DNA from: Blastocystis sp. Blastoise
Lineage: Eukaryota > Protista > Bigyra: Opalinata
DNA: 64,000 nucleotides
NCBI GenBank assembly: GCA_039096225.1
Contig: JBBPEB010000023.1
Coordinates: 310,001-374,000, forward strand
Direction of reading: 5' to 3'
Of the stretch, positions 6,107-12,073 are shown in pieces (position 1 is the first letter of the stretch; every line of letters starts with the position of its first letter). A model generated the notes under the pieces. That model saw only the letters and a program-made list of their open reading frames with translations, searched no databases and had not been told where the DNA came from. The position numbers and the translations under genes were made by a program.

Positions 6107-9100
6107 TTAGTTATGTTGTTGAAGTTTATAGAATAATATATAAGCATTTTCAGTGACTACATCTCTTTGAGAAACATATATAGTCGAATCATCATTACAT
6201 TCCATCCAACGTGAATACTGTTCACTCTCTAACGGATTTATAGACCTATATATTATATATTATATATATATATATATATATATATAAGATGAAGAATAGT
6301 ATATATTTAGATATATATAAATATACGTTCTTCTATTCTTTGTAAAAGTAGTTTTTAGTGAATGGATACTGTTACTACTTTTAATTGTATTCAAATAATT
6401 CCCTCGGGAAAACATATCTCGACATGAATTAGCAAATAATTTTTTATCCCATTCCCGGCAAAAAGAAGTATAATGCCCGCCATCTGTACTTCCATAATGA
6501 TTCACAATTCCAAAGCAGTCATATCTATATATATATTATTATTTGTATTAGTATTATTGTTATATTTATAGATAAATATAGTATTAAAAATTTTAATATT
6601 ATATATAACAAATATTATGATATTAATGGATAAATAATATATATATATATACTTATCTGTTCCTTCTTTGTGTTTGAAATAACAGGATAAATCTAAATCC
6701 TATATAATAATAAACATAATAATAATAATAATAATAATAATAATAATAATAATAATAATAATAATAATAATAATAATAATAATAATAATAATAATAATAA
6801 TAATAATAATAATAATAATAATAATAATAATAATAAAAGATAAACTATAATAAACAAAATAATAATAATATACATATAATGGAAAATCAACGAAAGTATT
6901 AATTTTAATCGCATGACCATTCCCGCCAAAAAACCCATCAAACATGGCTCCTCCAACGGATCCCCGTAGATTTCTGTAAGAAAACCGCATTAATTGAAAG
7001 ATAATCACGGGAGGCGGTCTATAGAGTGATAAATATTTATCACAATGAACTTCGTGTTTACATTTAGAACATATATATCCAGATTGTGTTCCAATATATT
7101 CAGTTCTAAAATAATTTGTCAGACAATCTTCTAAAGTACATTTCTCTTGATTTTCTGATTGGATATATATATTATGACGAATGTCCCATGATGTAACACT
7201 ATTCCGAGCACTTGTGGGGGACTCACCGGGGGTCTCTGGAAGAATCTCAAAAGAATTATCCTGAAAAACCGCGGGAGAAGAAGGAAGTGTATTTAAAATA
7301 ACATATATAGGACGGTTCACATGATTATTTAAATAATCTATTTATATATATAATATATTATATATATAATATTTATATATACATTCAAGAGTATGTTTAT
7401 CATTGTGAATATATAATCTTTCATCGTTATTAATAATAAATATAGAGCGAATATCCAATGCTATATATATATATAATTAATATTATATATAATTAATATT
7501 ATATATATATATACGTTCTTTAAGAGAAATGGAAGAGAGATATGTATATAGATCGGCCGTTAACATTTTGAGGGATATGACACAAAAACGAGGGATTGTT
7601 AACAGACTACTACCCTATATATAATAATAATAATTATTATTATTATTAATGAAAGTATTATTGATATTATAATAAAATAAAACATAATAAAAACAATATA
7701 TTCATAATATATATATATATATATATATATATATATATATATATATATATATATATATATATATATATATATATATATATATATATACAAAATAGAATGA
7801 TATCGTAGCTACATAGTTGAATATCGATAATTTCGGTTTTATCATGGAAAATAATGTAACAGCATTGAGGGACTTGAGGATCTTCGAACTGTCTTCATGG
7901 TTACTATATATATTATAAGTAGAATTATAATAATTAAGATATATATATATATATATATATATATATATATATATATATATATATATATATATATATATAT
8001 ATATATATATATATATATATATATATATATATACAATGTTTTATCTTGATAAACATAAATTTGAAATTGTTCTCGTGAAAAAGAATAACCTGATTGACAC
8101 TCAAGCAAACTCTATATATAATATATATATAGAATAATATATATAATATAATATATATAATATAATATATATAATATAATATATATAATAAAATATAATA
8201 TATAAATAATATATATATAATATAATATATATATATACTTGTATATCATAAACAGTAGAGGAAGGAGGAAGAGAAAGAGAAAGATCACGATAATCATTTA
8301 CTATATATATATAATATGTAATACTATTATTAATAATAATAATAGTATATATATATATATACATTTGCATTTCTCTTCAATTATAATTGGTGGGTATATA
8401 TGAATATCAAAAATAGATTGTCCATGTGCAGGTATGGTTAAAGAGAGGGATAATGAGGGTTCTAACGTAACGCTTTTATAACCGCAATTACGACAGGAAA
8501 TTGTGTTTTCAATTAAGAAATGGAAAATATCCGCGATTATCGAGCAATTCTTATAGATGTGACTATACCAATAAATACGATTATTTGTATACATTTTCGA
8601 CTGAATTACTATATATATATATAATTAATAATCAATACTTATATTAAAAAAGAGTAAAATAAACCAATATCTAATAATCTAAAAAATAATTATATAATCT
8701 ACTATTTATAGATCTACTATATATATATATACCTTGTTCTCTATATATATCAATATCGATTGATTCTTCTGTTTTCTCTACATACATTTCATCTAATAAA
8801 TCCATACTTCGGTGGCGATTTCGAAGGACTTCCCCGCGGGAGGACTCGGCTCTATCGTGTGATTTCTCTGTTTTCGTTTCTATTTCTTCTTCGTCTTCTT
8901 CAACTTGATCCTTTTCTAAATATTTTCTATAAAAAAAAATATATAATAATAATAATAATAATAATAATAATAATAATAATAATAATAATAATAATAATAA
9001 TAATAATAATAATAATAATAATAATAATAATAATAATAATAACAATAATAATAATAATAATAATAATATTATAGATATATACTCTTCTTCTTCTTGACTA

Positions 9101-12073
9101 AGAGCAATTGTTCCCTTATAATAATCGCGGTTAAATGATATTTTATTATCATTCATATTATACAGTAAAGAATTTCTATGAGACAATGTGTTCAATTCCC
9201 GCGGGGATTCCATGATATTTGTAAGAGATGACGAACTATCATTACTGTTATGAACAGGTGTATATACAGGAGAAGGAGGAGAAGTAGTAGTAGTAGTAGT
9301 AGTAGTAGTAGTAGTAGTAGGTATGGATATAACTATATAATAATAATAAATAGAGTATTATTATATACTTTTGGAGTTTCTTTTCGACTTTGTTTCAAGA
9401 TTAATATTAATATCTTTATTATGAAATACAGATGTTTTTTTTAAATCTATTTATATATATAGATAAAAATAGCTATATATATATATATATATATATATAT
9501 ATATACGTTGTTTTTGAATATACCATGCTGATGGAGAGATATTTAATTCATCATTTAATGCTATATATATATATATATATATATATATATATATATACTA
9601 TCGAGAAGGAGTAATAGAATTTCAAAAGCATCTTCTTGTCCGTATTTCGATATACGTTTATATATACGGCTTAATAAGGAACGTATACCTGTCTATATAA
9701 TAATAATAATAATAATAATAATAATAATAATAATAATAATAATTATTATTATTATTATTATTATATATACAGGTGACACAGAGCCTTTGCTTAGATAAAG
9801 TTGCTGAAAAAGTGTTGAAAGTGATTCAGAAAGTAATCCTTTCGATGGACTCTATATATATATATATAATTAAAAGAATATGAATAATAATAATTAATTA
9901 TATATATATATATATATATATATATATATTATGATCAAAAGAATATGAATAATAATAATTAATTATATATATATACTTGTGAGTTAATATGATATATATA
10001 TTGTTCAGCCATTAGATAGGTTCTTAACGGTAATACTTGATATATACATTGACATATAGAGGCAAGAAAACAGGTATTCCCAGTATTATTTATACCATTT
10101 ACACTATAGACATAATAATAAATAATAATAATAATAATATATATATACAGTTTATGATCATCAAATCGATAGATAACTGGCTTAGGAGCACCTTTATATA
10201 TAATAATAATAATAATAATAATAATAATAATAATAATAATAATAATAATAATAATAATAATAATAATAATAATAATAATAATAATAATAATAATAATAAT
10301 AATAATAATAATAATAATAATAATAATAATATTCAATATCTATATACTATTCACAAGAATATTTTTTTTTGTTTTGTAAAAGAAAGGAATATCATGAGAA
10401 TCTTGATTATTTTTACGTTTATTAAGAGGAACACAATAATCCCCGTGATAATACCAATGTATTTCTTTACATCGGTCACTACAATATATATAACTTTCAC
10501 ATTGTGAGCATTCCATGATCCCTTCTTCTCCACATATATAACAACTATTATAAGTAGGAGATAGAGAAGGAAGAGAAGAAGAGGAAGGAGGAGATAATGG
10601 AGCAGAAATAGGAGTATTCCCGTGGGAAATAGAAGAATGAAAAGGAGAAGTTGATAATGTAGAATGAGAAGTAATGATAGAATTATGATTATTCATAGAT
10701 ATATCTTTGAAATCAGGATGATTCCCAAGGGAACTTGAAGGAGGTCGACATTCAGTATCAGAATCTACGGTAACAAAATCATTATCTGACTCTTTAGAAT
10801 CTTCTTTTGAATTAGAAGCACGTGTAGGAGAGATAGGATGTTCATTTGTATTTATATAAACATGAAATGATTCGTTGTTTTGTGTGTGTATATTATTATT
10901 ATTATTATTATTATGGATTATTTCAGTATTTGATATATTTGAATGATCTTTTGGTTGTTCATTGATATCAATATCAATATAAACAGTAGGAGTTAAAGAT
11001 TTCGTTAATGTATTATTATTATTATTATTATTATTGTTATTATTATTATTATTATCAAGTGAAGAGTGAATTACGTTATTTGAAATAAGAGAAGCAGAAG
11101 AAGATGAAGATGAAGATGACTCTCCTTCTTCGATAAAATCACTTGATAAACTACGAAATTCTTCTTCATTTATATGATCTGGTGATATTAATATAGATCT
11201 TTCAGGAATAGACACATAACATAACTCTATACTACTTCCATATCTATATATTTATAATAATAATAATAATATATAAATATAATAAATAAATGTAATAATA
11301 TAATAAAAATATATAAATAAATATATAAATAAATAATAATAAATACAATATTAAATATTAATAATAATAATATATATAATAATAATATACTTAGTAGAGA
11401 AATATTTCCATAAGAATGTATTTATATATATATAATCAATTCCATAGATTAACCCATTTCTTAGTATTTTTATTCCTTTTTTTGAGGATATATGAGTACT
11501 TGGAAATGGCTCCTATTCATTATATAAAGAATATAATATTATATTAAATAAAATAAAATAAATAAAATAAAATAAAATAAAATAAAATAAAATAAAATAA
11601 AACAATATAAAATAAAATAAAATAAAATAAAATAAAATAAAATAAAATAAAATAAAATAAAAATAAAATAAAATAAAATAAAATAAAATAAAATAAAATA
11701 AAAAATATCTATATACAAGTAAAATATTACTGATACTAATTTTTCCTGGTTTTGCACCATGTTCCTATAATTGAACAATTATATAAATATTAAAAAAAAA
11801 ATAGTCTATAAACTAACATACAAAGATATAGCTTATCCAAGACCACATCCAGGTAGTTGGCATAAGAACTTGCTGTGAGCTCCTTTGTTTATGAATCTTT
11901 AAAACGTAACTTAATGCTTCATAACGTTCATCATCCAGTTCGAAATCATTCCATTGTTCATTTTCTTTTGCTACATAGTATCCTAGTTCTAAATCAAATA
12001 AGCAACAGAAAGAATCAGCAGAAAAAGAAACAAAACGAGAATTGGTTTCGTTACAAACATATATATCATCCAT
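6107..12073 (-). CDS. Ubiquitin-specific protease (peptidase C19) with N-terminal DUSP domain and MYND zinc finger; about 21 introns
   Basis: DUSP-like segments ([40 protein letters not shown]); MYND finger [27 protein letters not shown]; Cys box [16 protein letters not shown]; QEDAFE; CRNC and CSKC zinc motifs; His box [14 protein letters not shown]; W.ECNDD; NAYILFY. TAA at 6107-6109. Confidence 0.92.
9561..9598 (-). other. Pure microsatellite intron GT(AT)17AG, 38 nt
   Basis: Removal joins LLD-T-LNDELN, the conserved USP motif after QEDA. Confidence 0.88.
11545..11703. repeat. Intronic (AAAAT)n pentamer array
   Basis: Directly visible; lies in USP intron 2. Confidence 0.9.

Follow-up and report, generated by a model that had tools for sequence, protein, structure and literature searches.

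The (TA)n-capped introns of Blastocystis sp. Blastoise look like an unusual splice consensus with repeat slippage

Introduction

Why should the introns of a gut protist begin and end in the same self-complementary repeat? Blastocystis is the commonest eukaryote in the vertebrate gut, and the tortoise-derived isolate Blastocystis sp. Blastoise has a genome of 33.3 Mb with ~22% GC, part of which, a stretch of 64 kb (hereafter the window), is considered here. From the letters of a protease gene in this window, the original prediction proposed that the 5' (UA)n tract of an intron pairs with its 3' (UA)n tract, or that a UA-binding factor takes over recognition of the 3' end, as a lineage-specific splicing code. 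In the published annotation, for which RNA-seq-supported introns served as the basis, the introns of this genome are longer and variable, and low-complexity DNA makes up 11.8-12.7% in the tortoise isolates; no explanation is given there for the longer introns of the tortoise lineage, and splice motifs and TA tracts are not mentioned (Lind et al. 2025, PMC12129017).

Materials and methods

All splice sites discussed here are predictions from genomic sequence. A first gene finder used GT/AG and codon statistics without a splice motif model, and the final gene models were obtained with iteratively trained splice matrices, GT-AG termini being required by the predictor. The sample comprises 346 predicted introns from 194 kb, namely the window, which holds 97 of them, and 130 kb taken from other parts of the genome.

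Results

The MYND-USP gene

The gene from which the proposal arose encodes a MYND-finger ubiquitin-specific protease (MYND-USP; Table 1). Its joined exons form a single open frame of 1254 codons across the 21 predicted introns, and Pfam UCH matches follow one another collinearly exon by exon (profile positions 2-33, 72-100, 108-151, 119-176, 198-224 and 222-254), with a Pfam zf-MYND finger upstream. Of these introns, 19 have identical coordinates in the motif-free run and the final model; intron 5, being absent from the former, is the least certain. Taking out intron 8, whose predicted hairpin has -14.3 kcal/mol (z -1.3 vs shuffles), restores a conserved USP motif over exons 8 and 9, whereas leaving it in places a Tyr-Ile repeat inside the conserved USP helix.

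The roughly twenty examples that had been claimed for this gene are there: GTATAT opens 20 of its 21 introns and GTATATAT 14, while 17 end in TATAG and 14 in TATATAG. It is also an extreme case, its 5' runs averaging 18.7 nt where most genes have 4-10 nt. In the final model, the span originally singled out, 6247-11390, extends over introns 3 to 21.

Table 1. The MYND-USP gene and its predicted introns (positions within the window)
Feature	Position	Strand	Length (nt)	Description
MYND-finger ubiquitin-specific protease gene	6107..12073	-		22 predicted exons, 21 introns, CDS 3765 nt; gene model and Pfam
Intron 1	11765..11821	-	57	GTATGT...TTATAG; the only one here without GTATAT
Intron 2	11513..11716	-	204	GTATATAG...AATAG, interior (ATTTT)n
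Intron 3	11244..11390	-	147	GTATAT...ATATATAG
Intron 4	10192..10347	-	156	GTATATAG...(ATT)n...ATAAAG
Intron 5	10104..10148	-	45	G(TA)5...CTATAG; multiple of 3
Intron 6	9852..9976	-	125	(TA)n at both ends and middle, internal direct duplication
Intron 7	9693..9770	-	78	GTATATAT + (AAT)n, then (ATT)n + TATATAG; hairpin-like
Intron 8	9561..9598	-	38	Nothing but GT(AT)17AG
Intron 9	9447..9506	-	60	5' TA run of 32 nt...AAATAG
Intron 10	9333..9368	-	36	Predicted 12-bp stem between ends, z -3.2
Intron 11	8927..9082	-	156	GTATATAT...(ATT)n...TTTATAG
Intron 12	8609..8732	-	124	TA runs at both ends; motif-free run: donor 30 nt downstream
Intron 13	8301..8362	-	62	TA runs at both ends
Intron 14	8112..8238	-	127	14-nt-period TA-rich repeat along whole length
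Intron 15	7904..8034	-	131	5' (TA)n run of 95 nt
Intron 16	7615..7788	-	174	5' (TA)n run of 81 nt
Intron 17	7461..7514	-	54	TA runs at both ends
Intron 18	7338..7382	-	45	GTATATAT...AAATAG
Intron 19	6700..6873	-	174	GTATAT...(ATT)n...TATATAG
Intron 20	6525..6652	-	128	TA runs at both ends
Intron 21	6246..6326	-	81	GTATAT...(TA)n...TATATAG; exons 21/22 abut in UCH profile (224 / 222)

An extended consensus at both intron ends

The data support a distinctive extended consensus for these introns, GUAUAU(AU) opening them and (UA)UAUAG closing them. Among the 346 predicted introns, 59% of donors read GTATAT and 68% of acceptors TATAG, 154 introns having both; of the dinucleotides inside introns, no more than 6% (GT) and 16% (AG) stand in these contexts. 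Whether or not the gene finder models splice motifs, the frequencies are alike. For the 97 introns of the window the values are 62% for GTATAT, 42% for GTATATAT, 70% for TATAG and 57% for TATATAG, so that a motif shared by most introns holds for a consensus of 5-6 nt and is borderline for the longer tracts (42-57%). At the donor, U reaches 0.86 at +6, A 0.67 at +7 and U 0.71 at +8.

Concerning the other 3' signals, we could find neither a pyrimidine tract nor a clear branch consensus, as had been noticed from the letters. The T fraction is 0.50 at -20..-4 vs 0.53 in interiors, the median longest pyrimidine run is 4 in both places, TTTTT is depleted close to the 3' end, and yUnAy-type motifs are equally frequent at the 5' and 3' ends of the 346 introns. 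An element that does stand out at -40..-7 is UCUAU (62 vs 30 introns, p = 0.001), and on the sense strand of introns (AUU)n outnumbers (AAU)n by 4.5:1.

Position, length and slippage of the tracts

Introns are poorer in GC than exons (12% vs 28%), and perfect microsatellites account for 23% of their bases (AT 5.9 kb and AAT 3.5 kb of 45.5 kb). Repeats of (TA)n with n of at least 4 cover 0.32 and 0.28 of the outermost 10 nt vs 0.11 mid-intron, and (ATT)n is distributed the other way, with 0.02 at the ends vs 0.14 inside. The layout originally described, TA at the ends and ATT in the middle, is partly right: both enrichments exist, but the mid-intron cover means that TA tracts are also common within introns, and intergenic DNA contains 4.6 of them per kb.

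The end tracts are also longer than those elsewhere. The probability that a TA run of at least 8 reaches at least 12 is 0.63-0.64 at intron ends vs 0.28-0.33 in interiors and intergenic DNA, and the TA register continues with a per-nucleotide probability of 0.85-0.92 at both ends up to ~12 nt vs 0.56-0.8 elsewhere. Since end runs remain longer when conditioned on the seed, slippage acting uniformly everywhere fails to account fully for the ends, and the positional profile proposed as a check does reveal, for predicted introns, an end enrichment that exceeds simple seeding. We infer that a selected consensus may keep the proximal tract pure, and hence slippage-active, which would be the reason for the longer end runs.

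Terminal tract length differs strongly among genes and follows interior TA cover, both per gene (rho 0.48, p = 0.01) and per intron (rho 0.31, p = 4e-6), and in the 99%-identical HSP70 flanking duplicates (TA)n lengths differ by 2, 9 and 52 nt. Copy-to-copy length variation and an abundance that follows the regional repeat load are the features of slippage-prone microsatellites.

Spliceosome components

The U1, U2 and U6 snRNAs were identified by Rfam matches above cut-off, and their recognition motifs are canonical (AUACUUACCU in U1, GUAGUA in U2, ACAGAGA in U6). We also found an SF1 gene with helix-hairpin, zinc knuckle and Pro-rich tail, its SF1-HH domain scoring above the Pfam cut-off, and a U2AF65-like gene that is matched piecewise and under the whole-protein cut-off, its UHM scoring 47.8 bits for U2AF_lg vs 27 for CC1-like. 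The divergence of these components that a departure from normal splicing led one to look for is not seen in the motifs wherever they were looked at, the U2AF65-like gene being matched in pieces only. Among the hallmarks of canonical U2-type introns, GT-AG termini (required by the predictor) with a restored frame and canonical snRNA motifs are present, whereas neither a branch consensus nor a polypyrimidine tract could be detected ahead of the 3' splice site.

Pairing between intron ends

Complementary simple repeats do lie at opposite intron boundaries, and the expected number of end-to-end base pairs at 37 C averages 5.6 per intron. With 4 or more such pairs predicted for about half of the introns (48%), pairing is physically possible. 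None of the tests of coupling gave a signal specific to the intron. The 5' and 3' tract lengths correlate with rho 0.13 within introns vs 0.16-0.21 when the tracts compared lie in different introns of one gene or on either side of an exon, and permutation within genes gives p = 0.36, so that the length correlation foreseen in the original prediction does not go beyond a gene-level effect; in introns of at most 80 nt, where a bridge would be most feasible, rho is 0.04. Long tracts co-occur across introns at 1.08-1.41 times expectation, not above the 1.23-1.92 found across exons, and TA runs of at least 9 nt stand at both ends in only 41 of 275 introns (~15%). When an intron is given the final 25 nt of a different one, predicted pairing does not change significantly (5.6 vs 5.2 and 4.9 bp), and the minimum free energy of introns compared with dinucleotide shuffles has a mean z of -0.18 and a median of 0. 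The pairing of 5' with 3' (UA)n is supported by none of the length, swap and folding-energy tests.

The proposal was to fall if there were neither end enrichment nor length correlation beyond seeded slippage, no pairing in vivo, and canonical factors with normal branch points. The outcome is mixed: an excess at the ends, no length correlation, canonical snRNA motifs next to SF1 and a U2AF65-like gene, and an undetectable branch point. The pattern looks like an unusual splice consensus combined with repeat slippage, rather than a structure-guided splicing code.

Discussion

A consensus that hosts microsatellites

With a probability of roughly 60%, these are ordinary U2-type GT-AG introns whose AT-drifted extended splice consensus hosts slippage-prone microsatellites. 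Drift of the genome to its present base composition would have turned the splice consensus into a 5' GUAUAU(AU) and a 3' (UA)UAUAG, both of which would be short (TA)n seeds held by selection. Replication slippage may then have lengthened these seeds repeatedly, up to pure (TA)n of 95 nt, a history suggested by the tract statistics, while (ATT)n would have filled the interiors. Because the flanking G would set the splice site, tract length would be unseen by the mRNA and hence free to drift. The donor would be recognized by canonical U1, whose unaltered 5' end, AUACUUACCU, can in the putative register pair with GUAUAUAU over positions +1 to +3 and +6 to +8, and the 3' end probably through SF1, the U2AF-like factor and U2, intron definition being perhaps aided by the contrast in composition between exons and introns. 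End-to-end UA pairing would then be a by-product of common ends, not a specific selected bridge.

Alternative explanations

That the two (UA)n tracts of an intron pair so as to juxtapose the splice sites, removing the need for a pyrimidine tract and for binding of U2AF65, would fit the self-complementarity of both ends, the predicted pairs, the missing pyrimidine tract, the greater length of terminal than interior tracts, and some short introns predicted to fold as end-closing hairpins, such as intron 10. We nonetheless consider it improbable, given tract lengths that do not co-vary beyond the gene, the outcome of the swap and shuffle controls and the scarcity of introns with two long tracts; moreover, (UA)n pairs equally well with itself, with interior tracts and across exons, so that pairing has no specificity, a helix would hide the 5' splice site from U1, and the genome keeps a U2AF65-like gene. 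Another reading takes the tracts as a selected linear sequence, a lineage-specific replacement for pyrimidine tract and branch signals. Extended U1 pairing to +8 would serve at the 5' end, where +6U, +7A and +8U can pair with A3, U2 and A1 of canonical U1, and a UA-binding protein, a U2AF65 of altered specificity or weak U2-(UA)n pairing at the 3' end, where the lack of conventional signals means that another mark is needed; the persistence of the TA register, the UCUAU element and the strand bias of (AUU)n are in keeping with it. We regard this as a possible but unlikely reading, as conservation does not drop sharply past +8, 41% of predicted introns lack GTATAT and 32% lack TATAG, tract length varies by gene with the local TA load, and no candidate binding factor was identified. 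A version confined to the tortoise clade, in which terminal (UA)n became a selected intron-definition signal in place of pyrimidine tract and branch consensus after the split from the subtypes with 30-nt introns, read through extended U1 pairing at the 5' end and, at the 3' end, by a UA factor, U2 wobble or a short-intron UA helix bringing the first and last G next to each other, is likewise doubtful.

Mis-predicted introns, AT-rich low-complexity coding sequence or assembly errors could in principle have let the gene finder, or the eye, create it, the splice sites being predicted and the final matrices iteratively trained; yet the motif-free run returned the same frequencies and nearly all MYND-USP introns, the long frame is restored with UCH pieces abutting across introns, retention of intron 8 would interrupt a conserved helix, and the RNA-seq-supported annotation also has longer, variable introns (PMC12129017), which makes an artefact very hard to believe. 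We give as little credence to an origin from introner- or MITE-like elements that target TA, their terminal repeats or target-site duplications surviving as the TA ends. The ends are indeed mutually inverted repeats through TA self-complementarity, and some introns contain internal duplications. However, self-BLAST of the sequence analysed (low-complexity filter, E <= 1e-30, at least 300 nt, a setting blind to short intron-sized families) returned only gene duplicates, interiors are by inspection microsatellites and not common element bodies, and a high density of introns is usual throughout Blastocystis (PMC5608401).

Implications

The drifted consensus with slippage that we prefer suggests that the extra intron length of the tortoise lineage consists largely of microsatellites grown from the GUAUAU...UAUAG consensus, the interior being taken up by (ATT)n. 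Thousands of introns are apparently spliced with canonical snRNAs, without pyrimidine tract or branch motif and with A, not G, at +5. Set beside its relatives with 30-nt introns, Blastoise offers a natural experiment on the minimal sequence information for intron definition, and the same contrast bears on the joint evolution of splice signals and base composition. In annotation practice, Blastoise genes will be mis-called by gene finders trained on other genomes, and the terminal (TA)n creates many near-cognate GT/AG positions.

Comparison with known systems

The (AC)m-(GT)n structured introns of zebrafish and other teleosts, a class defined by co-occurrence across introns and not across exons, also have complementary dinucleotide expansions at both boundaries and a weak or absent pyrimidine tract (Lin et al. 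2016, Genome Res, PMC4691745). However, their two repeats differ and cannot self-pair, whereas Blastoise has one self-complementary repeat at both ends of nearly all introns, without intron-specific co-occurrence and without gain in stability over dinucleotide shuffles. Plasmodium falciparum shares extreme AT richness, GU-AG introns and the lack of a derivable branch-point motif, but has the consensus AR|GUAANW and YAG, and neither GUAUAU nor terminal (TA)n capping is described there (Sorber et al. 2011, PMC3089446).

Human-associated Blastocystis resemble Blastoise in their intron-dense genes, 98% GT-AG U2-type introns alongside a U12 system, and a very short minimal intron (Gentekaki et al. 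2017, PMC5608401; Lind et al. 2025, PMC12129017). They differ in that their genomes have 39-55% GC and an intron length of exactly 30 bp in almost all cases, against a median of ~100 nt, GTATAT/TATAG ends and microsatellite expansion in the tortoise isolate. In one gene of a relative with 43% GC, a few ~30-nt introns recognized by eye, without a gene model, start with GTAG and have no TA tracts; from these, the GUAUAU/UAUAG consensus appears to be lineage-specific.

Microsatellites have a life cycle of seeding, growth by slippage and decay through interruption. The Blastoise tracts conform to it in being pure tandem arrays, in the length differences between near-identical copies and in an abundance that tracks the local load; they depart from it in that their seeds would be a splice consensus held by selection, a fixed anchor at every intron end.

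Predicted introns and splice-site consensus

Introns were predicted with a dynamic-programming gene finder whose sole inputs are GT/AG dinucleotides, open reading frames and codon usage, followed by a second round iterated with learned splice matrices. The sample comprises the window and thirteen 10-kb stretches from other contigs, amounting to 194 kb and 346 introns, all of them predicted. The focal gene, predicted to code for a MYND-finger ubiquitin-specific protease (the USP gene), is listed in the table together with other features of the window; 19 of its 21 introns keep the same coordinates in the motif-free run. 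When its exons are searched separately against Pfam, they match zf-MYND and then, in order, segments 2-33, 72-100, 108-151, 119-176, 198-224 and 222-254 of the UCH profile. These matches come from single exons, frame continuity having been computed locally with no joined protein used. Exon 19 had no match above 47% identity among representative sequences, and a word search with exon 4 returned no match.

Coordinates of predicted features in the window
Feature	Position	Strand	Description
USP gene	6107-12073	minus	22 exons, 21 introns, single open 1254-codon frame
Intron 8 of the USP gene	9561-9598	minus	GT(AT)17AG; splits the conserved USP motif closing exon 8
Long exon	20361-35398	plus	~15 kb (~5000 codons) predicted as one unbroken exon; predicted gene start near 17962
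Tandem repeats	~30230-30825		79-83% identity, within the ~15-kb predicted exon
Merged gene model	46755-56426	plus	gene with a 6.3-kb exon, merged by the gene finder with downstream exons; the 6.3-kb-exon gene has 30-37% GC, a composition unlike the rest of the window

The original prediction, that introns have TA-type starts and ends with about 20 examples in the USP gene, is borne out with or without the learned splice matrices. In this gene, 20/21 predicted introns start with GTATAT and 17/21 end with TATAG. Among all 346 predicted introns, 5' ends read GTAT in 86%, GTATAT in 59% and GTATATAT in 42%, and 3' ends read TAG in 92%, TATAG in 68% and TATATAG in 45%, while merely 6% of intron-internal GT and 16% of intron-internal AG dinucleotides fall within these motifs; motif-free prediction gives a matching picture. 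Position frequencies alternate between A and T to about +14 at the 5' end and about -13 at the 3' end, and position +5 is A in 72% of introns and G in 11%. The TA-type ends of predicted introns are thus confirmed as an observation.

Distribution of TA tracts and slippage

In introns of at least 120 nt, (TA)n covers 0.32 and 0.28 of the terminal 10 nt at the two ends and 0.11 of mid-intron sequence, and the cover by (ATT)n rises from 0.02 at the ends to 0.14 in the interior. The proposed layout, with TA tracts at the ends and ATT in the middle, therefore holds for the end enrichment and the interior ATT, but TA tracts are also common in intron interiors and, at 4.6 per kb, between genes. TA capping is extreme in the USP gene, where the mean 5' run is 18.7 nt vs 4-10 nt in most genes, and heterogeneity between genes is significant.

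The end enrichment partly exceeds what slippage seeded by the consensus would give. Runs of at least 5 nt reach at least 12 nt in 39-41% of terminal cases vs 7-10% of interior and intergenic ones, and the rate at which a run continues by one more nucleotide, up to ~12 nt, is 0.85-0.92 for terminal runs vs 0.56-0.8 elsewhere; past this length the tails converge. Terminal runs are hence longer given a seed, but their length follows local TA load, correlating with that of the interiors of the same gene's introns (rho 0.48, p = 0.01) and with that of the intron's own interior (rho 0.31, p = 4e-6). Perfect microsatellites make up 23% of intron bases, and the flanks of two 99%-identical HSP70 duplicates differ mainly in (TA)n length, by 2, 9 and 52 nt. 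The cytosolic HSP70 gene is itself intronless in an otherwise intron-dense genome and is present in at least five near-identical copies (contigs 25, 16 [two], 4 and 8), the two on contig 16 forming an inverted duplication 100 kb apart.

Origin of the TA-type intron ends

With a probability of about 0.6, we favour the reading that these are otherwise canonical U2-type introns whose extended splice consensus has drifted towards AT. This consensus would both seed (TA)n microsatellites prone to slippage and anchor them, and the seeds at intron ends would then grow by slippage. That the UA at intron ends is instead a selected linear signal seems unlikely to us; the longer growth of terminal runs speaks for this alternative, the dependence of their length on local TA load against it.

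Still less probable is a UA bridge, in which 5' (UA)n pairs with 3' (UA)n and brings the splice sites together. In thermodynamic prediction the 20 nt at either intron end do pair with each other, by a mean of 5.6 expected base pairs at 37 C (5.9 at 25 C), and some short introns are predicted to fold as end-closing hairpins. However, when the last 25 nt are swapped in from another intron, the expectation is 5.2 pairs if that intron is from the same gene and 4.9 if it is from another, neither drop being significant, and 207 introns do not differ in minimum free energy from their dinucleotide-shuffled versions (z: mean -0.18, median 0). The predicted hairpins are generic to the shared ends; (UA)n can equally pair with itself, with interior tracts and across exons. 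The lengths of 5' and 3' TA runs show a rank correlation of 0.13 within introns, no higher than between a 5' run and the next intron's 3' run (0.16) or across the exon (0.21), and of 0.04 in introns of 80 nt or less. Shuffling 3' runs within genes gives 0.117 +/- 0.05, so that there is no within-intron excess (p = 0.36), an excess below ~0.1 rho being undetectable. Likewise, the observed-to-expected ratio for co-occurring long tracts is no higher across introns (1.08-1.41) than across exons (1.23-1.92). The proposed structure-guided splicing mechanism thus finds no support in any of the four computational tests (correlation, co-occurrence, swap and folding energy). Palindromic (AAU)n/(AUU)n introns, exemplified by introns 7, 10 and 13 of the USP gene, were also considered as a general class and rejected, their co-occurrence (7 vs 4.2 expected) not being significant.

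Splicing machinery and 3' signals

U1 is canonical, with two copies whose 5' start is AUACUUACCU, U2 retains GUAGUA and U6 retains ACAGAGA. SF1 is present: its helix-hairpin domain exceeds the Pfam cut-off, and it also has a zinc knuckle and a tail rich in proline; its gene directly adjoins the HSP70 copy of contig 25. Another gene, in which RRM pieces and a UHM are recognised, has its top score, obtained piecewise only, against U2AF_lg, and is a U2AF65-like putative orthologue. An Rfam search of the window gave zero matches. Judging from complementarity, GUAUAUAU can pair with canonical U1 at +1 to +3 and +6 to +8, not at +4 or +5, and pairing at +6 to +8 may be the reason why intron starts are conserved to +8.

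The absence of a pyrimidine tract and of a clear branch consensus, also part of the original prediction, stands for the predicted introns: the T fraction is 0.50 at -20 to -4 vs 0.53 in interiors, TTTTT is depleted close to the 3' end, and yUnAy or UACUAAC-like motifs are not enriched. UCUAU is enriched at -40 to -7 (62 vs 30 introns, p = 0.001); within the last 40 nt of the genome-wide intron sample, this enrichment sits 5-25 nt before the 3' splice site. The frequency of C is elevated at -6 (0.11), which yields CTATAG at the intron end. The UCUAU/CTATAG region is a candidate for a 3' element or for the branch region, and a weak peak of UAAC lies 15-30 nt from the 3' end. On the sense strand of all predicted introns, (AUU)n occupies 3201 nt vs 705 nt for (AAU)n, a ratio of 4.5:1, which may point to a U-rich sequence standing in for the pyrimidine tract, or else to a mutational bias linked to transcription. 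UCUAU/UAAC or the (AUU)n excess could have a part in 3' end recognition.

Comparison with known systems

The window has ~22% GC and is part of contig 32 in an assembly of 33.34 Mb and 34 contigs. Three tortoise isolates of Blastocystis have genomes of 26.0-33.3 Mb with 21-23% GC and 11.8-12.7% low-complexity DNA, and their introns are longer and more variable than those of human subtypes, nearly all of which are exactly 30 bp (PMC12129017). The text of that paper mentions neither splice motifs nor microsatellites nor TA tracts, and our literature search found nothing relevant on a GTATAT-type consensus or TA-repeat intron ends. In Blastocystis ST1, 98.3% of introns are GT-AG, and 346 U12-type introns are reported in addition (PMC5608401).

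The zebrafish class of structured introns, with (AC)m and (GT)n at opposite ends, is defined by co-occurrence of these repeats across introns and not across exons (PMC4691745), whereas the TA tracts of this tortoise Blastocystis show no excess for introns over exons.

On an ENA metagenome contig (1-7159), a eukaryote-type HSP70 with 90% identity to that of this tortoise Blastocystis lies beside genes called with the bacterial-type families HD, Spore_YtfJ and ribosomal L28. The contig's GC content is 0.40-0.44 over these genes vs 0.49-0.56 over HSP70, and it is possibly a chimeric assembly.

A 12-kb metagenomic contig belongs to a Blastocystis relative of 43% GC whose HSP70 is 84% identical. 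Two ~30-nt introns, read by eye and with no gene model in one gene on its minus strand, start with GTAG and end with TAG without TA tracts, in contrast to the GTATAT and TATAG ends of tortoise Blastocystis. Although the sample is very small, this suggests that intron ends of the TA type are a trait of the AT-rich tortoise lineage.
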